Of a stretch of DNA of 64,000 nt, positions 18,985-63,004 are shown piece after piece. Every line of letters starts with the position of its first letter. The first letter of the stretch is position 1. This DNA comes from Dicyema japonicum (taxonomy: Eukaryota > Animalia > Dicyemida): NCBI GenBank assembly GCA_011109175.1, contig RDEW01000017.1, positions 813,855-877,854 of the forward strand, in the 5' to 3' direction. Position numbers and translations under genes: made by a program. The notes beneath the pieces are model-generated. The model was given only the letters and a program-made list of their open reading frames with translations, was not told the DNA's origin and did no database searches.

Positions 18985-19038
18985 AAATGTCATGTGGCTC
19001 GCCGACGACGTGGTGGCATTTGAAAAAAAAGAACCACA
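18985..19038 (+). ncRNA. Candidate HDV-like ribozyme scaffold (P1-P2-P3 double pseudoknot; this copy lacks P4 and the catalytic C)
   Basis: P1 AAATGTC/GGCATTT, P2 TGTGGCTC/GAACCACA (one mismatch), P3 GCC/GGT, in HDV nesting order. Confidence 0.5.
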
Positions 19039-19091
19039 CTTTCCCCTATCTTCACGGGTGGACCAATAAGGAAGGCCTGCGTTGCTGCGGG

Positions 19092-19115
19092 GACGTTGAG
19101 GCAAACCCTGGACCA
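19092..19115 (+). other. 2A-like ribosomal skipping motif DVEANPGP
   Basis: Exact D(V/I)ExNPGP consensus at codons 36-43 of ORF 18987, just before the APE domain. Confidence 0.88.
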
Positions 19116-22100
19116 GCCAGAATAGTCCAACTGAACATAAATGGAATCAAGAACAAAATACTCGAACTTCGGACATTTGTGAAAGAAAATCACATTGATC
19201 TGTTGCTAATTCAAGAATCTAAACTTTCTCCAAAGAATTCAACACCAGTATTTCCGGGATTCACAGTAATTCGCCGTGACAGAATTGGCAAACTTGGTGG
19301 GGGTCTTCTCACAGTTATCCGCAACGGCATTCCGTTTGAGGACATAACCAACAGTGCTTACACTATGCTTAAAGGATATGGAAATCTCGAACTTTTGGTT
19401 ACCAAAATACGATTCCCAAGACTATCAATAACAATTGTCAACGCATATCTCCCACCGCTGAGTTCCTGCTCGTCCAGTGCCCCAGACTCACTCCTCTCGC
19501 GTCACTAAAGGATGTGATTATCTGTGGTGACTTCAATGCGAAGCACCCACTGTGGCTGACAGGACAAACCTACGACAAAAGAGGGAAGATGATAATTGAG
19601 GACCTCCACAGCCTATGTATACTCAACGATCCTGCATCTCATACAAGAACACCTACTCGACGTAATGATAAACCTTCTTCTATCGACATCTCATTGTCAT
19701 CACCGTCCTTGGCCCCACTTATTGACTGGTCAGTGAAGTATGACACCAGGAGTGACCACAACCCAATATTTTTGGAGGTCAAAACAAGGTCACGGATAAA
19801 AGGACAATGCCCAACAATAACTAACTACAGCCTTGCGAATTGGAAAGGATTCAAGGAATACGTCGATAATTGTATTGGACTATTAAATTTCCCCACTTTT
19901 CCCTCCGTCGAACAATTAGTGAAATGGTTCAACTCCATTATAAACGATGCGAAAAAGAAGTACATTCCTATGGGGAGACAACCAACGTCATCAAAACGTT
20001 TTAACACAACGACGAAACATCTGATCAGAGAACGAAATAATCTAAAGATGGTAAAATCGCCAACAGAAGAGAACATCAGGAAAATACGAGAATTGAACAG
20101 AGAGATCGACAACAACATAAAGACAGAAAATGCAAATAGATGGACGAGACTATCGAAAGCTCTCTACAAAAACCCCCCAATGCAAGAGTGTGGAAGTGGA
20201 TCAAAAACATCAAAAGACCTCCCCAGAGAGAAAAGTCGAAGTCTACATAAAACCAGACACTCTGATAAAATATTACACATCTATATCCTACAGGAAGTTT
20301 TCAAAAGAACACCAAGTATTCCTGAAAAAGATTGAACCGAAACGCTCCGATGACTGGATCCTATTTACTAGTCAGGATGTTCGCAGAGCCATATCTAAGG
20401 CCAACAACTCAGAGGCCAAAGGACCAGACAACATAACCACATGTGAACTGAAGCACCTAGGCCATCGAGCCCTGGAACTATTAGCCTATATATTCAACCT
20501 ATCCATTAACACAAATACAATCCCTGAAATATGGAAGAAGTCTCTAATCAGACCTATCCGAAAACCCAACAAACCAATAGATGAACCATCTTCCTATCGC
20601 CCAATATCTATTCTAAGTCCGGTCTCAAGGATCCTTGAAAGGCTTGTTTTGGAAAAAATACAAGACTCAATCTCAATACCTCCGACCCAGCACGGATTCC
20701 GGGACAACCATTCGACGACAACACACCTTACAACCCTCACACAATTCATTGCGGAAGGATTTAACTCCCCCAAACCCATCAGAGGACAGTACTTATATCC
20801 GTGGACATCACAAAAGCGTTCGACTCAGTCCCTAGGAAACTCCTAACAAAGAAAATATACGAAACCAACATCCATCCGAACCTGAAACTTTGGCTTGGAA
20901 ACTTCCTAAATGGAAGACGAGCACAAGTACTCTGCAACAACATCAAATCAAGATCTCGCTATTTCCCAAATGGAGTCCCTCAAGGCTCCCACTATCACCC
21001 CAACTCTTCAATCTCTACATAAACGACATGCCACAAACCTGTAATGAAAACTGTCTAATCCTCTCCTATGCCGACGATATCATTCTTGCTCCAAGAACAG
21101 AAGCATTCAATCAGCGACTCAGTTGGCTCAACAAATGCTCGACAACTTGGAACTATGGCTCTCGAAGCGGAGACTTGACACATCAGCAGCAAAGTCCTTT
21201 GTCACACTGTTTACCACCTACAAGAGACAGCTCTGTATCGAACCAAAAGTCTTTATGAAGAACGAAGCTATCTCTATTAACAAAACACCGAAGATTCTGG
21301 GAGTAACCTTTGATCAGGGACTCACCTTTATCCGGCATGTTGAAAACAGAGTAACTTCTGCTCTGAAAAATGAGAATTTTAAAAGTGCTCTCAAAAACAC
21401 TTAGAGATCAAACTGGGATCCTTGCCACGATTTACAAACAATTTATCCAACCAACGATGACGTATGCAAGTCCTTCATGGGCAATGCAAATGTCACGATC
21501 TTCCACATTGAAATTATCTGCAATCGAGGAGACTGCAATAAGGTTAATTGGACCAGATCACAATATCCAACCTATTGAAAATTTTTTAATTGAACTACAA
21601 CGGAAATATTAAAGGAGGCTGTTCTAACAAGCTGCCCTCTATTCCAAATACTATCGAATTATCTACAATCATACAGAAATTTTGAGCCGAAGCCATGTCC
21701 AATGAGAAGAGCTGTTCAGGATTCTCGACCCCGCCGGACTCGTCCTCACCTTTGTCGGTCTGGGATCACTTAGTTAGATGAGAACTTTTATTTCTTTCTC
21801 TTTGACCCAGTGATCCTGGGGGTAATAATAATAATAACTAAGGAATACGAATAAGACATAGTGCAATAGAGATGTCGTCACCACCTCAACCAGAATGTAA
21901 AGCACTCACGTAAAGAAACAACAAATGGCAATATTCGTATTCCTTACCGACTTCTCCGTTCACTCTGGGAACTTTTAATTGCTGAGGACTTAAAAAATTT
22001 TTACAAAAAAGGTTTTTTTTAAATATCAACTGTCAGAGCCAATGTTCCGCTAAATCTACTCACCATACTGGTCAACTCTGCATGGTAGGCAATACAAATT

Positions 22101-28340: not shown

Positions 28341-28437
28341 TATTATTACCTCCAGGATCACTGGGTCAAAGAGAAAGAAAAAGTTTTCAACTAAGTGATC
28401 CCAGACCGACGAGGTAGAGGACGAGTTCAGGCGGGTC
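28341..28437 (-). mobile_element. About 100-bp 5'-truncated Vingi-like 3' end
   Basis: Reverse complement matches 21727-21830, including the hairpin and TAA tail. Confidence 0.85.
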
Positions 28438-37650: not shown

Positions 37651-37874
37651 AAGATTTGATTTCTTATTCAATTTTTTTTACAAATTATACAAAGTTGAGG
37701 AAGACAAATAAGCTTGGGTCCTTACTTCGAGACAGTGAGGACATCGTTTTATATAGTGTTTGCTCCACTGGTCCTTTGAGTCTCGAGAAGGCGGGCCAGG
37801 ACACGAGAGAAGGTTATCTGCGAACATGAAGGGTAAAGTGACGATTTTGTCTGGTCTTATAATGATTTTCTATC

Positions 37875-37990
37875 GAATACCACGTGGCGCCAGCGTTAGT
37901 GTGGTGCTATGTGGCTACTTGAGTTGAAGATTTTTTGTTTGCTTCTACTCTTCTTCCTCTTCCCTTTGGCTCCAGGGAGCTTGAATTCTT
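37875..37990 (+). repeat. Copy of the extended 5' UTR of the Vingi-like family
   Basis: ccacgtggcgcca..tgtggtgct..ttgaag..ttcctcttccctt is shared with 39160-39245(-) and 53960-54025(-). Confidence 0.65.
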
Positions 37991-38269
37991 CATTCAGGTT
38001 GGTATCCAAGAAAATAGACTTGCTCACGGGGGAAGACGGATATTCCAGGTAAACTGTTAAATATTCCTGCCACGCGGAGGAAATCGTTATTCAGGTATGA
38101 AATATTGATGAATTCCGATTTTTATGTTGACCTCAATGCCTAGATCAGTGATTCTTAACCTTTTTTAATCACACTCGCGAATTTTTTTTGCCCTATATTT
38201 CACAAGTCAAAAAGTTATTACCACATAATTTTTTTTAACAAAAAATTTTTTTAACAATTAAACAAATTT

Positions 38270-38405
38270 CAATTGAGGAAGCCTGCTGCGTGGATTGCGA
38301 ACGAGTTCCCTCGGAGTATGGCTATTCCAATCTTTTGTCTTAGCCATAACCCTTCTTGTTGATCCCTTTTCTTTCTGGCAAGCAATCCTCTGAGTTCTCG
38401 CAAAA
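38270..38405 (-). mobile_element. CRE 3' end fragment
   Basis: Close match to 9150-9285. Confidence 0.8.
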
Positions 38406-38644
38406 CGTACATAATTATTTTAGAAATATTTTTTTATTTAAAAATCATAGTTTTAATGAGATCTCTGTGGTTGATGAGTATTCACATGATTCTCTAAATT
38501 TGCCTTTCTTTTCTTAAGTGCAATCCTTATATCTCCTATTGTACATTTATTTTGTTTTGTTTTTTTCCCGATGACATTGTTGAGAGTGTTAAATCCTCTT
38601 TCCATGCAATATGAATTCGGAAAACATAGAATGATTTTAGTTCT

Positions 38645-38830
38645 CAGCTAACTAAGTGATCCAAGACCGACAAGGAAGACGACGAGTCCGGCGGGGTCGA
38701 GAATCCTGAACATCTCTTCTCATCGGACATGGCATCGGCTCAAAATTTCTGTATGATTGTGGACATTACGATAATGTATGGAATAGAGGGCAGCTCGGTA
38801 AACTAGCCTCTTTTAAGAGTTTCCTTTGTA
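38645..38830 (-). mobile_element. Vingi-like 3' fragment
   Basis: Reverse complement matches about 21600-21775. Confidence 0.8.
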
Positions 38831-38959
38831 ATTCGATTAAGAAATTTTTAATGGACTGGATTTTGTGTTCTGGTCCAATTAACCTTATTGCAGTCTCCTC
38901 GATTATGGATAGTTTCAATGAGAAGGATCGTAAAATCTACATTTCCCACGAAGAAATAA

Positions 38960-39245
38960 GTTAAAGTAAACAATTAATTAAGTGTATCCAGTTTCCACTT
39001 CTACAGATTCCATCCGGAATCAACATAAAAGGTAAAAGACGTCCATGGTTGCAGTTGTGAAAACCCTCCAGTGGAGTGGGGGAGAGCAAATGATCCTTTT
39101 TTCGTGCCGGCCTGGCACTGGGCGCCACCTAGACAGGTGGATCACATGACACCACTCTAATAGGAAGAAAGAGGAGGAACAGACGAACAAAACTGAAACT
39201 TCAACCAATTAGTCACGAAGCACCACATGGCGCCACGCGGGTATT
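38960..39245 (-). mobile_element. Short bipartite Vingi derivative (5' UTR and ribozyme fold joined to a 3' terminus)
   Basis: The 5' part matches family 5' ends; it ends ggatacacttaattaattgtttact..tttcttcgtg, like the 3' end at 41815-41850(-). Confidence 0.6.
39091..39153 (-). ncRNA. Candidate HDV-like ribozyme, most complete copy
   Basis: P1 GGTGTC/GGCGCC, P2 TGATCC/GGATCA, P3 ACC/GGT, loop TGTCTA, P4 TGCC/GGCA, J4/2 beginning CGAA (followed by four extra A). Confidence 0.55.
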
Positions 39246-39299
39246 TCTATTTTGAAATAAATATAAATGTTATATTTTTAATATAATATAAATGTTATT

Positions 39300-39945
39300 G
39301 TTATCTATTCGGAAAACATAGAATGATTGCAAGAAGAAAATTGTTATCTACGGTTACTATGCAAAAACTTATGAAATGTTGGATAAGAAAATGCTCGGTC
39401 GGGCCATCACTCCGACTCAGGTTGTATGAGGCGTTCGTGAGGCCCATACTAACATACAACTCTGGGACGTGGGGAATTTCGAAAACGGACGAACAAAAAC
39501 CTTGACTCCTTTCACAGAAGGCAACTTCGGTCTCTCTTGGGACTAAAGTGGCCAATACGTGTAGGGAGTGAAAATTTATATAGAAGATGCGGTTCCGGAC
39601 CTCTGAGCACCATGATCATGAAGGCTCGCTGGAGATTGTTTGGCCATATTCTCAGATTGGAACAAGACACGCCAGCAAACGTCGTCATGGAAGAATACTT
39701 CGATACGTCAGGGGAGAAGTTCAGAGGTCGTCAAGAATAACTCTTCCGGAAGTCCTTAATGGTGACCTGAGATCAGTAACCAGACAACTAAAGGACGGTG
39801 AAGACCTTAGTAGTCTGCGGCACTTGGCATCGGACAGGAGGGGATGGGAAAGGCTAATTAAGAGGATTGTTCAGACGCGGCACGAATAGAATTATAGTTT
39901 ATATGATTCTATGTAGTTGCTTATAATAATAATAATAATAATAAT
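39300..39945 (+). mobile_element. RTE-like 3' fragment with TAA tail
   Basis: RLRLYEAFVRPILTYNSGTW, ARWRLFGHILRL, (TAA)n at about 39922-39945. Confidence 0.88.
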
Positions 39946-41799: not shown

Positions 41800-43500
41800 C
41801 CAAAAAAAACACCAAGAAAGAAGGAGTAAACCAACTAATTAAGTGATCCCGGCACGCCTCAACAGGATCGAGAGGTTTTTCCTATGTTCTTCCAGAGTAC
41901 CCACGGCTTTCCTGAATAGACGACGATCATCTTTCATTAGAGTTTGAAGAGGGGTGCGTTTTTTCCCCAAATTTCGTGTATTTGAGGTTTCTAGCCTTGA
42001 ATGGATGAAACGACTTGTTTCCGATGAAGCCGGAGCCGTTATTTTCGATTGCGGCGTGGTTAAGCATTGGGGGAAAAAATCGCGGGTAAATTTGTTAGAC
42101 GTGCAAGTTTGCCTGTTAGGGAGTTGATCTTGTATGAATTGGATATTGAAGCTCCATAGGCCCATGAGACACAAGCATACTCTACCGTCGGTTTTAGAAG
42201 TTGATTGAACAAGACGACAGCACATTCCTTGACGGCCAGGACTTTAAAAACGGTTTGATTATATTTAGTTTCCTGAGACCCTTTGTCATAACGTTCTTCA
42301 TATTTTGAGAAAATGTCATCAAAGGGTCAAATGTCACTCCCAGGATAGTTGGACGAATCTGTAATGGTAAGGAGTCTCTATAAATGTTTAAATCCAGTGT
42401 ATGTTTTTCTTTTCTGTCCATGGTGAAGATTGTATGCGTTGATATATCCCTGGATATGAGAGACGATTCAACTTCAACCAGGCTCCTAGGTCATCAATAT
42501 GTGACTGAAGCTCTGATTTTGCTGTACCCACGTATTTATTCCTGCTAGCGATGATTAGGTCGTCAGCATAAGTGAGAAGCATTGAATCTGGTCCTACAGG
42601 GCAGGGTAAATCGTTGAGGAATAAGTTGAATAACGCCCGAGAAAGGGGCGATCCTTGAGGGACACCATTTGGTAGTAGACGGGCCTATACAGACACGTCC
42701 TCTTCTTCCGGAGAGAAAATTGGCTATCCATCTTTTTAAAACCGGCTGAATGGTGGTGTCAAAATTTTTTTCGTGAGTATGTTCTCGGGACAGAATCGAA
42801 CGCTTTCTGGATGTCCAGGGAGACCACGATTGTCCGTAGGTTCGTTGAACCCTTCTGATATAAATTGAGACAGTGAAGTCAAATGTGTCGTAGTTGAACG
42901 CTCACATTTGAAACCATGTTGAAAGTGGCAGTCAAGCAAATGGGATTTAATTTTCCAGAGTACGAGTTTCCCCATTAGGCGCGATAATGCGCACGTTAAT
43001 GAATTTGGACGGTAGAAAGAAGGTATGGTCTTCGGTTTTCCTAGTTCTTAGGATGGGTATTATAAGTGAATTCTTCCATTTTTATGGGATGACGTTCTTG
43101 TTAGAAGACAAATTAAAAATTGACGTAATCGAATTGATTGCAACATTACCAAGATGTTTTAGCAAAATTCCCGGAATGCCGTCAGAACCACACGTATAAA
43201 ATCTCTTCATCGATCTTATAGCCTGTGTAACCTCGGCCACGAAGTTGGTTTAGGCATTAAATTCCGAAGGTGACAAGAATGGGATTTCGAAAAGTCCTTG
43301 TGACTTATGGATGCGTAATGTTTCATTAGGTTGTTAGCTTGCACAGTATTTGGAGCAGAAAAAGATTCTGATTCATCTGATTCGACGAATAGTTTTCCAT
43401 AAAAGACTCGTGAATTTCATATGTCCAATATATGATAATAGGCGGTTCCACGCCCTATCTTTCTTTTATCTGATGAGCTTTGTAATTCTCTGATTTAAGT
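41800..43500 (-). mobile_element. Degenerate Vingi-like LINE (RT to 3' end)
   Basis: FQHGFKCERSTTTHLTSLSQFISEGFN, LLTYADD, PTILGVTFDP, ends LRRAGIT-stop. Confidence 0.85.
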
Positions 43501-43860
43501 TCTTCATTCTCGAGGAAATGTTAACCTAGTGTGTACCCCCAGAACGTATGGCTTCAGTTTTGTCGTGGTCATTATTCGTAGATTCATGATGGAGAGGCCA
43601 AGAGCGAAAGGATCAAAGCTCAGTAATCTATCCAATAACCTTCGCAGTTCGATGTGAGTGCATCGTCGATGAGTGAAGATAGACATGAAGCGGCAGAGAT
43701 CCGAACTGCCTTCGGAATCCTCAGTGGTATTTTCCTTGACTTTCGCAAGCTGGATATGTTTAAGAGGACAGAATTGGAGTCAGAGATTGACTGCTCGAGA
43801 ACTGGTCCGATTTGTTGGTAAGTTCTCTTAGGGGGTCCAGTCTCAGGTATCCGTAATGGT
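43500..43860 (-). mobile_element. CRE N-terminal fragment between the actin fragment and the Vingi copy
   Basis: RKIPLRIPKAVRISAASCLSSLIDDA matches RKIIPVRIPKASRISIASALSSCIEKA in ORF 29010. Confidence 0.75.
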
Positions 43861-47933: not shown

Positions 47934-50160
47934 TAGCGGCATGCGGTTCACCTGTTGTTGTGGTGGCGCCTGGTGCAAGTTATGCACTAAAGAAAAGCGT
48001 TTGAACTTCTCCATCCCTCTACGTCCTTTGGAAGGGTGGCCTACCAACTTCAATTTGCTACTCCAGTCTGGCGACATCAAACCTATCCCGGGTCCTGATT
48101 CCACGCTGGTCATTCTCCAACTTTATGTCAATGAAATCCGTAATAAAGTGCTGGAGCCACGTTCCCTCTTGGCCCGTTTGAAAATGGACATTGCCATTAT
48201 TCAGGAGTCTAAACTCTCCACGTCAGCCGCCACCCCACGCTTCCCTGGATACAATATACTCCGAAAGGATCGGACAAGAAGTCTCGGTGGAGGATTATTG
48301 ACGTTTGTTAGGGAGGGTCTTTTGTTCACCGATGTCACCCCGTTTATATTTTCTCTTGGCAAAGGAGACCCTATTCTGGTGCAAATCTCTATCGAAGTTC
48401 CTTTCTCACCCTCAAGTCGTTTTACACTATGTAATATTTATATTCCACTTCAGAGTTCGTCGACTTCCCTTATTCCAACGTATGTTCCAAACATATCGAA
48501 ACTTTTTGAACTGAAAGATCTGGCATTAAGCGGCGACCTAAATGCCAAACATCCATTCTGGCTCCGGACACAATCAGCCGATAGTCTCGGAGAGTACATC
48601 CTTTCCTTACTTAATGATTTGACTATCCTCAATGATTCGGACGCTTACACAAGAACCCCGGCTTGCAGAAGGGACAGTCAACATCCTCGGACCTGTCTTT
48701 CTGCTCTCCTTCTATGGCTGGATGTATTACATGGAATGTTCGTTATGGTTTCTCAAGCGACCATAACCCCATTGTGTTGAGACTTAGAAGGCCTATTTGT
48801 TCACTGTGTTGTTCTACAAAGTTCAAAAATTATTTGAAAGCTGACTGGCAAGGTTTCAGGCGTATGTGGACAATAGTCTGTTTGACTTACTATGGTTAGT
48901 TGTACAGTAGATAAGACGGCCAAGATTTGTCTGTTATCATTTTGAAGGCTGATAAACTATTTATACCTGTCGCCTCTTACAAGAAGTTCAATCCAAGATT
49001 ATCATCTCAAATTGTGTCACTCATCAAGAAATGAATGCGCTGAAGAGAAAAGAACGCAGTCCAATAACTCCTTTTATTCTATACGTTCACTGAATACCAA
49101 ATTATCTGAGCTTATCCGAACTAATAACAGACTCAAATGGAGCCGTCTAGTTGGACGACTATGTCACAAAAACTCTTGCGCCACATTTTGGAAAACGCTA
49201 AGAAGGATCAATAGCCTCATCAATAGGAGGACTGCGGTACTGGGCCGTACTCGCAACGCTTCGGAACCCAAACTGCAAACAAGATTATGAAGTACTACGT
49301 ATCGATCAGCCATAAAGATTTTTCTCGTTCTACACTTGTTGAAACAAGAACCGTATTCCACTTTCTTCACCTTCCCCCATGATGTTGACAAGGCTATTAA
49401 ATTGCTACGTCCCACTCGTTTGTGGTCCCGACGGTGTTTGCACTATTATCTCAAACACCTTGGACCTCAGGCACGGGCCATACTATCAAGACTCTACAAC
49501 GACTTTATCAACTACCATACGCTACCTAATATATGGAAGAACTCCCTGATTTCGCCAATTTTAAAACCTGGAAAACCAAAAGACGTTCCCTCTTCTTACG
49601 TCTCAATAACTTGTATTTTATCAAAAGTGCTGGAAAATTTGTATTAATGCGTATTTCTCCTGTTCTACATCTACCAGAATTTCAATATGGTTTCAGGGTA
49701 GACCGTTATCAACGACTCATTTGGTTCTATCTCCCAGTTTATTACTGACGGCTTCAACATGAGAACACACTTACGGACGGCCTTAGTATTATCGATATAC
49801 AGAAGGCCTTTGATTCTGTTCTGAGGAAACTCCTAACGCAAAAGATTTTTAATTCTAACTTACATCCGAATATCAATCTATGTGGAAATTTCTTAGTCAG
49901 GGTTTCGTACATTTTTGCAAGGAACTGGGAAACTCATTCGAAGGAAAATGTGGCCCATGCAGAAGAATTTCGGTCGGTTATAAAAAAAGTGCACGCCAAT
50001 TGAATTCCTATGCAGAAGGAAGAGAAGGCGCTTCCGAAATGCGGTAGGGTTATAGACGAAGAGAGTTCGGATGTTGTTGGAGGCTGGAATCACCGAATTA
50101 GCTAGTTTTGACCTATCTTTCTTGGTGCTTTTGTAGTTAAATTTATTAAAAATAAATAAT
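47934..50160 (+). mobile_element. Second long, degenerate Vingi-like LINE with a decayed 2A motif and ribozyme fold
   Basis: TNFNLLLQSGDIKPIPGP, IIQESKL, GDLNAKHP, SDHNP, WKNSLISPILKPGKP, FQYGFR, QKAFDSV; 3' end matches 9960-10090(-). Confidence 0.85.
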
Positions 50161-53799: not shown

Positions 53800-54025
53800 A
53801 GTGATATTGGCCTCCCTCAGCAGTCTATGCATAATCGGACTTAAAGGAGCTCCGTCCAGGGGGAACTCCTCTGGATGGCTGTTAACTAATGCTTTTGTTT
53901 GGATATAATTTAGGATTATATCTAGAGCAACCAGAGATGGTAACCACATGACGCACGCTAACAATTCAAGCTCCCTGAATCAAAGGGAAGAGGAGGAACA
54001 TGAGAAACAAACAAAAAATCTTTAA
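53800..54025 (-). mobile_element. Decayed Vingi-family 5' end with ribozyme-like fold (53891-53958)
   Basis: GTC-A-TGTGGTT-ACC-ATCTCT-GGT, then an 8-bp hairpin GATATAAT/ATTATATC followed by CAAA. Confidence 0.55.
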
Positions 54026-54039
54026 GGAGTGTAACTCCA

Positions 54040-56110
54040 TTATTTCCTGGATACATCGTAATCAGAAAAGGTGGGATACTTGACCTACTCTGATGTGAGC
54101 AGACAAGTGGACAATATAATTTACATGAAAGGACCGCTGAACAAATCTCGATTGATGTCGTTAATGATTTAGGTCACCTCATTTTGATTGACTTATACAT
54201 TTCCCGTCGGGATCCTGCCCTATAAATTATGTTCCAAAACTCGATATAAGTCTACTAAGACTTTCATAGTGACAATAATCTAATTATACTAAAGTAGAGC
54301 CGATTCAAAACCCCACATAGGAACAAAGCAACCTTCAGAACTACATAATCTTCTCCTTGATCAATACACTATTCATGGAAAAGACGATCGCATCTGCTAC
54401 TTCGTTTAATTTTATTAATTATTTGTATAAAAATATTCATAAATTCATGCAGTTCAATAGATAAATTTTTCACTACCAAATTCTGCCTGTGCAAAATGCA
54501 ATGAACAAATATCGCATTTGGGCATTTTATTTTAAAAATACCATAAAGTGCACGCTTTGTTATATAAATTATTTTAAATAAATTTATGTATAAATATGTC
54601 ATCATTAAAAAATTCGTAATTAAAAAACTCGTTGAGAGACACTGATCTAAACCGTGTAATCTTCCCAGCAGAAAGCTATTTGTCTTCCGAGCAGTGTATA
54701 GATGTTATAACACTACATTCGACTCCGAACCTCGTTCCCATATAAAGAAGAGGAACTCTCTGAAGATAATTAACCTCTACCTTATTTGACTTGAGGAATA
54801 AAAATGTTTTATTCAAAAAATCACAACCCTCATAAACAAAAAAGAAAAGTCTTGGAATCGAATATTATTATCTATTAAACAAATGAAATCGCGATACTAC
54901 TTTGGAATATAACCTGATGAAGTATTACCCCCTACAAGACACAAGGACTTTTCGAGGACTCTCTACTGTTGCTTACGTAATTTGTATTTAAACCATCTTC
55001 ATGGATCGAACTTTTTACTCACGTTGAGGCTACATAGGCGTTAAGATTCATGAAAAGTCATATACGTCTCGTCTATATGGCATTCCTGAAATTCTGCTAA
55101 AGCATCTTGAAGAGATTGCAGTCAGATCGATTAGTTCAATTTTAATTTGTCTTCAATACGAACGCTATTTCTAATAAATGGAAGAACTACATATCATACC
55201 TGTCTTAAAACCAGGAAAACCTAACGCCCACCTTCATCTTACTGCCCGATATCCCTGACCTGTACGTCATCGGGTCTCATGGAAAAACGTGCTTTGGAAA
55301 ATTAAACCCCATTTTCCCTTTTGTCACTACCAACATGGATTCAGATTGAAACGTTCTACAACAACACACTTAACTTCCTTGACATAATTTATCCCGAAAA
55401 ACTTCAACGAACCTAGACGGCATCTACGAACAGTATTAGTCTCGTTAGGCTTCCAAAGGGCATTTAATTCAGTCCCGATAATCCTACAAACGAAAATTGT
55501 CTTCAACATCTCCATTCAACCGACTTTAAAACGACGGATAGTCAATTTTCTTACAAAAAAGAGATTATGTGTATAAGCCATTCAAGATCGAGATCCCGCC
55601 CCCTCCTGAATGTTGTCCTTCAGGGATCGTTCTTTCTATAGCGAATCCGATCGCTTCTATTAATCAGCGATAGAAGCCGTAGGTACACGTAAACAAGATG
55701 ACACTAAATTCTAATCAATTACGTATCGATTTAAAATTTTATTATAAAATTACGTAATAATGTTTAGCCATACTAATTTTAGCTCTAAAATTTAATCATT
55801 TTTAAAAATTTTTAACATAAATATTTAAAATTACAATCTGTCAAGCTAAACTATTTCAAATCAACCCTCTACGATGTGGGCACCACCCATATCTACCAAC
55901 ATATGATATACTCTGCCCCTTTTGCAACCTCAACGTGCTGAAAACAAATCACCTATTTCAATGTCATGAATTGGCACAACGTTTCTCCACAATGCCGGAA
56001 CTGACCGATGGGAGCGACCAACATCTGCTGCGTCCTAATTAATAGCTGTTGGCCTCCTACAAGTTAGTGAGGCTGGGGTTACTTATCTAACTAACTAAAT
56101 CAACCCTTAC
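54040..56110 (+). mobile_element. Heavily decayed Vingi-like LINE, interrupted by a minus-strand hAT remnant (54369-54605)
   Basis: FPGYIVIR, KPGKP..YCPISLT, KAFNSVP and CPQC..HLL remnants; hAT motif FVHCILHRQNL. Confidence 0.65.
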
Positions 56111-57899: not shown

Positions 57900-58930
57900 T
57901 AACATCCCAGGACCACGGTAAAACTAAGCTAATTATCATGTGATCCCGATGCTTTCCATTAGTGATTTCATCTTTGACATTATTGCATTCATTATATTAA
58001 TCCAAAGAACATCAAGAAAAATTTCAAGGCTTACTAATTAAATCATCATTTTAAGGCTTACTAAGTAGCGCCTGTGACAGATTATGGCTCTGTGGTTAAC
58101 ACTGTCTTTGATATGTCGAGACATGACATTCAGGAGACATTTGGAACTAGAAGTTGAGATGAAGTAAGCAATCACCGCATGACCGTCCTGGGCGAAAAAC
58201 AAATTGATCATTTCTGAATTAATCTTCTTTTTCCAGCTTATTTGTAATCCTCCAGAAGACAATTTTTCCATGATTTTTAAGATTGACCGAATTAGGCTGA
58301 TCGGACGGTAGCTATCAGGATCATTCTTTGGTCTTTTTGTCTTCGCTACCACCCATACAATGGTCTTCTTCCATTCCTGTGAAACACGACCAATTTTTAT
58401 GCATGCGTTGAACATATCTTTGAGAACTTCAAATAAAATTTCTGGGCCTTCTTTGAACATCCTAGCTTTTATGAAATCACTGCCCGGAGCTTTATTCTTG
58501 ACAGTTCTTATTACTATCTTCAGTTCTTCTAGAGAGAACTCTAAAAATGCTGTTTTCTCTGATAATGGTTCGTAACAAGTCTTCTCCGAGATGACATCAT
58601 CGTCCACATCAAATATCTTTTTAACCTGTGTCTCAAAAACTAGAGGTATTTTTTCTTCAGCATAGTAGGTGCCATCCGGTTTTTTGAGCACAATCTTGTT
58701 TGCGATTGACTCTGGGTTCCTCACTCTTCGGTATACCTTCCAGAAAGAGGGATTGTGTTTGTTTAGCTTCCGTAGTCGAGAGTTCCACTTATTCTCATTC
58801 CGACTTTTGAATTTTTCAGACAACTGCTTTTGTAGTTCGCCAATTTTGTGAGACAAGGCTAAGCGGTCCTGTGGGTCTACGCATCTCTCAGTTTAGTTCT
58901 TAGATTATTTCTTTTCAACACAATCTTCTT
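57900..58930 (-). mobile_element. Internally deleted APE-type LINE (RT N-terminus joined to a GIT-stop 3' end)
   Basis: KAPGSDFI, WKKTIV, SYRPISL; MESIGIT-stop near 57945. Confidence 0.75.
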
Positions 58931-59739: not shown

Positions 59740-59884
59740 CCTTTTGAAAAAAAAGATGTCTAAAGATAGAAATATCAATAAAAACAATATCGAAAAATAT
59801 TTCATGCTAAATTATAATTTCTCTAATAGTAAAACCAAAGAAAATCAATTGTAATTAATTAACACTATGTAAGCTGAATTCTTC

Positions 59885-62800
59885 ACAAACGCGTTGTAAA
59901 GCCTGCATCTAATGTCAATTCCAAGTCCTTTGGCCCTTAGCCATCCTTTCTTCAGCCATTGCCGTATTTGCCAGTGTTTTCTTCCTTAGTACATCTTCAG
60001 CGTCTCATAGTAGAGAGCCGAGCTTATTAGTACGTCTCCATCTTTCATGAGTAATATCGTCTCTTTTGATTTCCGTAATTTCAGTTTTGTTAACATTTAC
60101 GCTGAGAAACCATTTTTCTCAAGCTCCGTTGGTGCATTTTCTAGCAGGTGTTGGAGAAAATCCACATCATCCGCATATGATGTCTCTTCTATGTCGCATT
60201 TACGGAGATCGCGGAGTGCAGATTCAAGGTATATGGTAAATAGTAAAGGGGAGAGGGAATCACCCTGGGGTGTCCCAATCGTTGTTTTGAAACTGCGGGA
60301 AGTTGCTCTTTCTGTCCTCACAGATAGTCTTGTGTTCGCAAGTAGTAGTCTGATTATCCTAACCGACGATTCATCCAATATTTGCTCAAGCACATTCATC
60401 AGTTTCTGTCTGTTTATTGAGTCGAAAGCTCTGGAGAGATCTATTCCCAACACGGTCGTTGCGCTCTTGAATCTTTGGTGCGTTGCGCAGCGCCATCTGT
60501 GGCTCCATACAATGTCTGCCGTAGACCTCCCTTCTCGGAACCCACTTTGACTTGCTGGTAGGTATAGATCCGCCACACCCTTTATCCGGCTTAGTGCAAT
60601 GTTTGCCAGCACCTTGCGTATCGAATTCAGAAGTATTATCGGGCGGAGATTTTCTACTGGTCTTTTTGATTTGTTCGGTTTTTGTATGGGTATTAATAAT
60701 CCATTTCCAAGTCCTAGATCGGTATTAGTTTCAAAGACGTCATTTAGGGTTTTTGCAATTGTGTTGCTAAGTTTTTTTGGCCCATATTTTAGGAGCTCAG
60801 GGCTTATGTTGTCCGGCCCAGCACTCTTGTTGTTTTTCAGTTTATTTATCGCTAATTTCACCTCTTCCACTGTGATTGAGATTTTTAGCGCCTTTGCTTC
60901 TCCTTGGAAAGGGGGAAAGTCATTATTTTCTTTATTCAACAGTGTTTCGAAGTGTCGTGCAATCAATTCTGCTTTTTCTTTTCTGGTTACCCACGAATTT
61001 TCCATCTTTGTCTTTGATGTGAAGGATGTTTTGTCCTTTCTTTGTCCGCAGCAAAGCCGCATACATCCTTGAATTGTCCTTTAGGCATTCCACATCTTTT
61101 AATAGAGATGTAATAATTTCCCGTGAGTGTTTTCTGTTCATCTTTTTGATTTTCCATTTTAGTTCCCTTTGTTGGATATTAAGCTCTTTTTTTTACTCTC
61201 GTCTGACGTGTTTGCCGCTTTTAGCCGTAGCTCTCTGCAATGTTTTGCCATATCTGGCACGTTCGGGTGGTGATTTAATTTTAGGGCGTGATGATTTCGG
61301 ACTCCAAGGCATATATTGGCCGACTTGGATATTACCTGCTTTGTTTGATCCCACAGAGTTCGTACTGATGATTCCGGTGCGGTTTTCTCCATAAGAATCT
61401 CGATTTGTTCGTGATATTTAGCTCTACAAGTGGGCTCTAACCACAATTTTTCTGTCTGAAAGTATATATTGGGCTTTGTCTCGCCTTCTTCGCGTTTTCA
61501 ATGTATTTTTTCCCAGTCAGGTGCTTTTTCCACAGAGTTTTGCAATGACGATCCTGTGGTCGCTGTCAGTTGTTGTCCCCTGGTAGGAACGTGCATCATT
61601 TAGCAGGTGTTGATCAGACAGATAATGTAGTCGATTTTTTTTTTTTTTTTTTTTTTTGTCCGTTTGTTTTTTTCTTTGTCCGTGCCACGTCGTCTTGTGG
61701 CAAGCTGAGTGCGTGAAGGCCGTGTTGCACAGGAAAAGGCTATTTGCCTCGCAGAAGTTTACCAGAGAGGCTCCAGATGCATTTCTCCTTCCGCGCCCGT
61801 GTCTTCCAATAGAGGATTCTTCGGGCCCCATTCGCATTCCGGCCTTTGCATTCATATCTCCCGCAACAAAGACAAGGACGAGGAAGTATTATTAGAGTAT
61901 GTGCTTGATAGTTCTGAGTAGAATTCCTCGAGCTCACGGGGTTCTTGATTACTCGTCCACAGTGTGGTGCATAGACATTTATGACAGTTATATACTCTTG
62001 GACGGGCATAGTTCATTTAGTTTGACTTGTAGGACACATATTCGGGCGTTGACTCTCCAAAGCGATGTAATTTTTGAGGTAATCCACGTGTAGGGCAGGT
62101 CCCATGCCGTAGTGCTTGTATTCAGTTGGAAGAGAATCAGTCGGTAATTGCTCCATGTCTCATCGCGTCCATTTTCGATTTTCGTCTCTTGTAGGAAGCC
62201 AATAGATATTTTGTATTTCTCGAGATCGTCACAAAGTACTTTCCTTGTCCAATCTTTCGATATTCCACATGCGTTGAACGTCATTAGCCTGAATTCTCGA
62301 TTGTATGATGATTGTTTTTCAGACATTTTTCTTAACCGTTGTACAAAGAAAAAACGAGGCACGTCACCACCTCACCAAAAAACTGTACAACGCTGGGACA
62401 TGGGGAAGTTTTTTCTACGAACTATTGAAACTGGATTCGTTCCATTGAAGGCAACTAAGAAGCTTACTCGGAAAAAACGAGGCACGTCACCACCTCACCA
62501 AAAACTGTACAAACGCTGGGACATGGGAAGTTTTTTCTACGAACTATTGAAACTGGATTCGTTCCATAGAAGGCAACTAAGAAGCTTACTCGGAATGGAG
62601 TGGCCACGTAGAATATCAACCACTGGTATCTACAACAAGTGTATGTGTTCTTACATCAGCAAGGATGTGATAGATGCCCGGTGGAGGCTATTTGGGCATG
62701 TACTAAGAATGAACCCGGACCCACCCGCTAACAAAGCGATGGAAGATTACTTTGACAGTTGCGAAAAACCCTTCCGCAGACGACCTAGATCGACACTTCC

Positions 62801-62989
62801 GAATGCCTTAAACAAAGACTTAAATCGTGTGAGAAAAAATCTAAAGACGGGGGACGACCTGGACGAATTGAGATCACTCGCATTCGACAGAGGAAGATGG
62901 AAAAGACTAACTATAAATATTGTTTCTTTGAGTGTTGCACATGCGGGGCTATAATCATTATGGCTTTCGTGAAAGTGCCTTAATAATAA
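59885..62989. mobile_element. Full-length RTE-like LINE with an inverted 5' portion (59885-62382 minus; 62383-62989 plus)
   Basis: The minus part encodes APE (LMTFNACG, FLQETK, DSDHRIV) and RT up to LYNAFVK; the plus part resumes at LYNAGTW and runs to the TAA tail; TSD taagctgaattcttc at 59870-59884 and 62990-63004. Confidence 0.9.
62349..62592 (+). repeat. Tandem duplication of about 123 bp spanning the RTE inversion junction
   Basis: aaaaaacgaggcacgtcacc..agcttactcgg occurs twice, with small indels. Confidence 0.9.
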
Positions 62990-63004
62990 TAAGCTGAATT
63001 CTTC

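Follow-up and report, generated by a model that had tools for sequence, protein, structure and literature searches.

A candidate HDV-like ribozyme fold at the start of a 2A-bearing LINE family in Dicyema japonicum and related elements, and within a high-copy SINE-like element

A LINE begins at position 18985 of a stretch of Dicyema japonicum DNA of 64,000 nucleotides (hereafter the window, meaning the whole stretch analysed), and its first nucleotides can be arranged in the helix order of the HDV ribozyme. The question raised by this locus is whether the arrangement represents a self-cleaving RNA that sets the 5' end of the element, a conserved RNA module with another role, or a pairing produced by some other constraint. 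We consider it probable that it belongs to an HDV-like ribozyme located at the very 5' end of LINEs of one family, which have a single APE-RT ORF and lack RNase H; intact members would self-cleave, and the copy at 18985 (c1) is dead.

The window consists of AT-rich animal DNA and is full of retroelements. Other RT-bearing LINE fragments, from different families, are found at 42126–43522 (minus strand), 55193–55570, 58260–58544 and 60049–60882, and one of them belongs to an RTE-like element at 59870–63004.

The decayed copy c1 and its closest counterparts

In c1, which lies on the plus strand, the 5' strand of P1 (AAAUGUC, 18985–18991) pairs at all seven positions, one of them G-U, with the 3' strand GGCAUUU (19015–19021). 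An AUG occupies the J1/2 position (18992–18994) and is followed by the 5' strand of P2 (UGGCUC, 18995–19000), which pairs with 19031–19036 with one C.A mismatch, and by P3 (GCC, 19001–19003, with GGU, 19012–19014), which is identical to the P3 of the relatives L002 and L006. The loop enclosed by P3, L3, has the sequence GACGACGU; it is 8 nt long, ends in CGU and begins with G rather than U. The initial annotation had described a nested fold in HDV order with a longer P2, UGUGGCUC (18993–19000) against GAACCACA (19031–19038), and this fold is read directly at 18985–19038, with 7/7 pairs in P1, 7/8 in P2 (the same C.A mismatch) and 3/3 in P3. The helices follow one another as in HDV, i.e., in a nested double pseudoknot, and every helix except P4 is present. 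The predicted cleavage site would be located directly 5' of 18985.

The catalytic base of the HDV ribozyme is C75. At the site where the relatives contain P1.1, P4 and a C-containing J4/2, c1 has only a G followed by eight A residues (19022–19030), so that neither P4 nor the C is present between the 3' strands of P1 and P2, as had already been noticed in the initial annotation. L002 and L006 could form P1.1 (GC with GC), as could the Octopus sinensis copy described below (GG with UC), whereas its usual form is impossible in c1. Because P4 and the catalytic C of J4/2 have been lost, c1 is predicted to be inactive, and its self-cleavage appears unlikely from the sequence.

The coding features of c1 agree with what had been annotated. 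An ATG inside P1 (18987–18989) opens an ORF of 173 codons (MSCGSPTTWW...GDVEANPGP), and codons 35–43 of this ORF encode the 2A/StopGo motif GDVEANPGP (19089–19115), although the context preceding the motif (GLRCC) is less Leu-rich than in the relatives. The AUG at J1/2 is out of frame with 2A. It lies in the string GUC-AUG-UGG, which is identical to the ORF start of the locus L001 and of two further copies, c3 and c5. The APE-RT body and 3' tail follow at 19116–21786 in frameshifted form, as indicated by Pfam matches to APE and RT and by tblastn, in which the APE-RT similarity reaches approximately 21600 with several frameshifts and stops. The 3' end, 21786, is placed where similarity to the tail of another copy (c2) stops. 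When target site duplications (TSD) were searched for around c1, no score exceeded those of shuffled sequences, and the 5' end of c1 is not fixed by a TSD. Accordingly, c1 is a dead LINE copy, a decayed relic.

A nearly intact counterpart, c5, is provided by a LINE of O. sinensis (L014:3158–3088, minus strand), whose fold opens a 618-aa ORF with 2A (MWFTFS...GDVEQNPGP). Its P1 is GAUCGUC/GACGAUU, with a G.U first pair; J1/2 consists of the start codon AUG; P2 is UGGUUC/GAACCA, P3 is ACC/GG(A), and L3 is UUCUCGU. After the 3' strand of P1, c5 contains GG, a P4 of 7 bp and ACAAACA, the segment across which c1 is gapped in the alignments. Compared with c5, c1 thus retains P1, the AUG, P2 and P3, together with the CGU at the end of L3.

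Three further copies in the window, each with P3 ACC/GGU and with P4 hairpins of differing sequence, were found where the initial annotation had placed them. The copy c2 (39091–39153, minus strand) is treated separately below. The copy c3 (47934–47998, plus strand) is a decayed fold with which a second LINE copy begins; this LINE has APE and some of RT, and its 2A is degenerate (GDIKPIPGP). The copy c4 (53891–53958, minus strand) belongs to the L001 subfamily, and its fold is decayed as well; directly before it stands part of a shared sequence, 'U', which is also found in c2, and no APE was found downstream of the fold. In c2, c3, c4 and L001, P4 is retained and J4/2 begins with C-N-A-A. The J4/2 C is present in these four, in c5 and in all relatives, c1 being the one without it; conversely, the CG of L3 is present in c1, c5 and all relatives and is missing in c2, c3, c4 and L001. 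The loop-3 G.U pair has been described as critical (PMC3386971), and since the L3 CG, which supplies the G of this pair, is missing, the activity of c2, c3, c4 and L001 is doubtful.

Upstream of P1, c4 and L001 share about 20 nt (permutation p = 0.02). A broader conservation of some 25 nt upstream of P1 in all copies was considered and rejected, because permutation supports the c4–L001 pair only and not c1/c3. Some 15 nt beyond the 3' end of the fold, L001 (L001:1575–1610) and c4 (53875–53845, minus strand) have another conserved hairpin in common, CCAGAGG...CCCUGG.

Conservation of the fold and the possibility of chance pairing

The bare nested topology is by itself not beyond chance. A loose HDV descriptor has 27,336 matches on one strand of the window, a generic descriptor recovers 339 loci in 128 kb (the window searched on both strands), and a strict version with perfect helices, P4 and the C still gives about 23 loci in 128 kb, among which c2 is the best. 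Comparison of MFE folding with shuffled sequences yielded insignificant z-scores of -1.25 to 0, relatives included. These results would fit a reading in which the pairing is a by-product of a conserved leader peptide, of a DNA-level promoter or of a monomer motif, with the likeness to HDV arising by chance; furthermore, the region is coding in c1, c3, L001 and c5, and GUGGCGCC-AUGUGG-like words are repeated in the head of the SINE-like element that contains c2. The evidence from homologous copies, however, makes such an explanation very improbable.

Homologues were collected with a profile of the two N-terminal ORFs of the window, which yielded 5,434 protein relatives; an N-terminal 2A motif was found in 45 of the best 150 of these. 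The closest protein is annotated in O. sinensis (P0001, LOC115229065). A word-based protein search with the N-terminus of c1 gave no matches, and a protein search with P0001 returned only 3 proteins. Protein relatives with complete folds share 34–44% identity in APE. Their folds are situated at the 5' end or the start codon, at L002:351–416, L003:213–283, L008:539–615, L009:40–101, L011:136–215 and L006:591–656, the last belonging to a family with further copies at L007, L012 and L013. No RNase H domain was found in the relatives. A single APE-RT ORF without RNase H fits Vingi and also the CR1, L2 and Rex1 types. A conserved motif, 'VFS/VFG' at the peptide or nucleotide level, separates the fold from 2A in other relatives.

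The helices of the relatives were located by a descriptor that demands pairing, and pairing alone is therefore partly circular as evidence. This helix-only descriptor gave one candidate each at L002, L003, L006, L007, L008, L009 and L011, and these candidates share several features which it did not demand. L3 is a heptamer, UNNACGY (UGCACGU, UUUACGC, UAUACGU, UUCACGC); J4/2 is CAAAU, CAAAC or CAAGA; and P3 is of the GCC/GGU type and abuts the 3' strand of P1. A P4 hairpin is found in all candidates, with a GAAA loop in L009. At the same time, the sequences of P1, P2 and P4 are unrelated between loci. When a signature derived from the folds of these relatives (L3 ending in ACG plus a pyrimidine) is added to the descriptor, the sole match in the window, on either strand, is 18985, with no match on the minus strands of the relatives and one stray in about 70 kb.

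Two alignments bear on covariation, and both are small samples. In a plain MAFFT alignment of the relatives (A7), P2 and P3 are 98% paired, compared with 17–46% when the partners are slid, and 7/9 pairs change on both sides. The second alignment comprises six copies (c1, c2, c3, c4, L001 and c5), was also made with MAFFT unguided by structure, and includes the decayed copies; 81% of its cells are paired versus 31–50% with slid partners, and 5 pairs are changed on both sides. P1 illustrates this, as c1 (AAAUGUC/GGCAUUU) shows compensatory changes on both sides relative to c2 (GGUGUC/GGCGCC) and to c5, and P4 is represented by five unrelated sequences among c2, c3, c4, L001 and c5. The initial annotation had proposed to judge the fold by P1/P2 covariation and the J4/2 C; both are kept in the relatives, the latter as CAAAY or CAAGA.

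A constraint acting on peptide or DNA is difficult to reconcile with these observations. The leader peptides vary widely while the helices are kept; P4 has five unrelated sequences; in c2 a stop codon comes right after the AUG; the fold of L002, like that of L009, is situated for the most part before the ATG; the motifs in L3 and J4/2 correspond to those of HDV and CPEB3-type cores; and the pairing collapses in the slid-partner controls.

Searches with covariance models, also suggested at the outset, did not recover the fold. Rfam models gave no HDV-type match, at gathering thresholds or at E<=10, for c1, c2, L001 and four relatives, a null result which carries little weight because well-formed relatives were missed too. 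A model of our own (R1), built from six relatives whose seeds score 52–62 bits, found none of c1–c4 in the window and gave only 10 bits for L008 and 6.7 bits for L001. R1 is too narrow as a homology test.

The boundaries of genomic copies provide a separate line of evidence. In the L006 family, 4/4 copies share sequence from nucleotide 1 of P1 while their upstream flanks are unrelated, which is the footprint expected if the template RNA starts at the ribozyme cleavage site. In c5, 15 nt from the interior of the fold are duplicated directly before nucleotide 1 of P1 (L014:3173–3159, minus strand), so that the sequence discontinuity falls exactly at the predicted cut. In L013, partial copies of the first 17 nt stand in tandem before P1 (L013:640–700), and both these repeats and the 15-nt copy in c5 look like template jumps at the RNA 5' end.

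The design of HDV-like fold, 2A and APE-RT that had been ascribed to c1 is consequently upheld for the family by the complete folds, the covariation and the genomic 5' ends of the relatives; c1 itself is decayed and probably inactive. In the proposed mechanism, the ribozyme of an intact member would cut the transcript just 5' of P1 and provide the RNA with a defined 5' end wherever transcription had begun. The start codon would lie within or beside the fold. In c5-type copies (c3, c5, L001) it is the J1/2; in L006 it is located in P2, in L002 at the junction of J4/2 and the 3' strand of P2, and in L009 it lies 12 nt past the fold, with 2A downstream. The 2A/StopGo site 35–60 codons further on would free a short leader peptide from the APE-RT protein.

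The fold inside a high-copy SINE-like element

The copy c2 has a different context. It belongs to an internally deleted, SINE-like element of 671 bp (38636–39306, minus strand), on either side of which lies a TSD of 21 bp without mismatches (39327–39307 and 38635–38615). The fold combines P1 GGUGUC/GGCGCC, P2 GUGAUCC/GGAUCAU, P3 ACC/GGU, P4 GUGCC/GGCAC and C-GAAAAAA with an L3 (UGUCUA) that lacks the CG; the family majority of the P1 5' strand is GGCGUC, and P1 is fully Watson-Crick or G-U paired. Over its last 315 nt, c2 shares 85% identity with the 3' end of c1. Neither APE nor RT is present, there is no ORF, and the AUG is directly followed by UGA. A further LINE/SINE 3'-tail fragment, 87% identical over 47 nt, is found at 28389–28435 (minus strand).

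The abundance and the ends of this family were assessed by placing contigs of four public runs on 37800–39500 at at least 80% likeness. Summed contig depth is 1–3.5 million across 38640–39240, with a peak over the fold, as compared with 8–16 thousand in the flanks. The only cluster of loose ends with heterogeneous flanks is at 39240 (74, 65 and 10 contigs in three runs; agreement 0.42–0.45), and the family unit therefore extends from about 39240 to 38636 (minus strand), with its 5' boundary 87 nt upstream of P1. Thus, c2 is not a LINE 5' end but forms the core of a SINE-like element present in very many copies. Between the element and a second copy of its upstream region, a separate extremely high-copy repeat (38199–38426) reaches a summed depth of up to 3.1 million, and several contigs there have joints that skip about 183–207 nt.

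The upstream segment 'U' of c2 recurs without the fold at 37868–37985 (plus strand; U3) and in part in c4. Depth over the fold is threefold that over 'U', which fits many head-less copies, at a binning that does not resolve ends at P1. The head itself (39240–39190, minus strand, and 37868–37930) starts with GUGGCGCC-AUGUGGU and continues with GGUUGAAG about 35 nt later. By eye only, its words at 39240–39190 resemble the A and B boxes of tRNAs; ARAGORN predicted no tRNA anywhere in the window, and no further SINE heads were found in an extra 21 kb of O. sinensis sequence. The head also contains GGCGCCA, a perfect complement of the 3' strand of P1. This heptamer (39234–39228) was considered as an alternative, distal P1, and cleavage there is unsupported, the family boundary being 6 nt further upstream. 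An additional 64 AT-rich nt (39243–39306, minus strand) lie inside the TSD of c2, upstream of the family boundary and outside the repeat family, and could represent a 5' transduction or nucleotides added at the 5' junction.

The position of the family boundary implies that the RNA templates of these copies were uncut at P1, which leaves two options: a variant fold without activity, or propagation by an uncut fraction of the RNA alone. We propose that the fold and the LINE 3' tail would have been captured behind a different head in this hugely amplified family, and that the RNA which was copied would be the uncut form. The initial claim that self-cleavage sets the 5' end is contradicted in c2 and in c4, both of which carry shared sequence upstream of P1. 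The related claim that 5' ends lie at P1 holds for the L006 family and agrees with the discontinuity in c5, but fails at the boundary of the c2 family.

These observations raise the alternative that the pseudoknotted fold has been conserved as a 5' RNA module which has lost, or never possessed, cleavage activity in the lineage of c1–c5 and L001, and which serves instead in binding of the LINE protein, in 5' protection or in cap-independent initiation. Such a role would explain why the fold is retained inside SINEs behind another head and why the c2 family keeps both the sequence upstream of P1 and a fully paired P1; it is also in line with the four of six copies that lack the loop-3 CG and yet keep P1, P2 and P4 by compensatory changes. 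There are precedents, as R2 ribozyme folds bind the R2 protein and act in an IRES-like manner (PMC6765202), and some trypanosomatid SIDER folds look adequate yet are inactive (PMC4035085). Nevertheless, c5 and all relatives outside that lineage keep the L3 CG and the J4/2 C and have 5' ends at P1, J4/2 still starts with C-N-A-A in c2, c3, c4 and L001, and the head-bearing SINE copies could stem from an uncleaved fraction of the RNA. We regard a non-cleaving module as unlikely, and favor a ribozyme that is active in the intact LINEs. For the SINE-like elements themselves, it is conceivable, and we put it forward only tentatively, that a ribozyme-derived pseudoknot with an altered loop 3 forms the conserved core of a very high-copy SINE superfamily, where selection would maintain it although it does not set the 5' end.

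Comparison with known systems

With the HDV and CPEB3 cores, the fold shares the nested double pseudoknot, a 3-bp P3 abutting the P1 3' strand, a J4/2 in which C is followed by A residues, and a 7-nt L3 ending in CG plus a pyrimidine (UUCACGC, UGCACGU and UUCUCGU in the relatives and c5). The corresponding L3 is UUCACGU in CPEB3 and UCCUCGC in genomic HDV. It differs from both in the absence of an Rfam match and in having a G.U first pair of P1 only in some copies (L006, c5).

To our knowledge, the combination of ribozyme and 2A had previously been established only for the trypanosome L1Tc/ingi elements. In these, both components have been characterized (PMC3185411, PMC4035085), with support attributed to Heras 2006 as cited in PMC3708506. 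The L1Tc design is the closest analogue of the present LINE family: Pr77 (L1TcRz) is likewise an HDV-like fold in the first 60–80 nt of a single-ORF APE-type LINE with an N-terminal 2A, and the derivatives NARTc, RIME and SIDER keep the fold, some copies being inactive (PMC3185411, PMC4035085, PMC3708506), which may be compared with c2. In contrast, the present family has an animal host, no RNase H domain, and an AUG inside the fold. 2A sequences are established in animal non-LTR elements including a molluscan Ingi element, while Odon 2013 detected none in the Vingi elements known at that time (PMC3708506).

HDV-like ribozymes have been described at the 5' ends of R2, R1, R4, RTE, LOA and Ingi/L1Tc LINEs (PMC5786205, PMC6765202). 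Those of R2, RTE and Baggins (LOA) are of the same class and have the same proposed job, i.e., freeing the element RNA from a co-transcript, likewise with a possible role in cap-independent translation, and SIDE-type internally deleted parasites keep the fold as c2 does (PMC6765202, PMC3414825, PMC5786205). The present lineage is different from these LINEs, carries 2A, and has a fold that overlaps the coding start.

SINEs that join a Vingi or RTE 5' part to a LINE tail, SINE2-1_ACar and SINE2-1_AMi, were reported by Kojima in 2018, who pointed out that an active ribozyme would remove the head of a SINE (PMC5786205). The same bipartite plan, a different head followed by a LINE 5' part and a LINE 3' tail, is seen in c2; however, the captured 5' part in c2 is the ribozyme-like fold itself, and no tRNA head was detected by ARAGORN.

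If the preferred reading holds, a ribozyme combined with 2A, with the AUG built into the fold, would be widespread in animal single-ORF LINEs, and these LINEs would fall outside the six ribozyme-bearing clades listed in 2018 (PMC5786205). The presence of the fold inside a very abundant SINE-like family bears on the origin of conserved SINE bodies. Should the tentative reading of the fold as a SINE core be true, there would be an RNA-level reason why only ribozyme-bearing LINE clades donate 5' parts to SINE bodies, and a 2A-bearing animal LINE lineage, possibly Vingi, would join the clades with 5' ribozymes. Vingi-type elements with their native 5' and 3' UTRs are used as RNA gene-insertion tools (PMC13708176), and a ribozyme at this position would bear on the function of the 5' UTR of Vingi-type elements.
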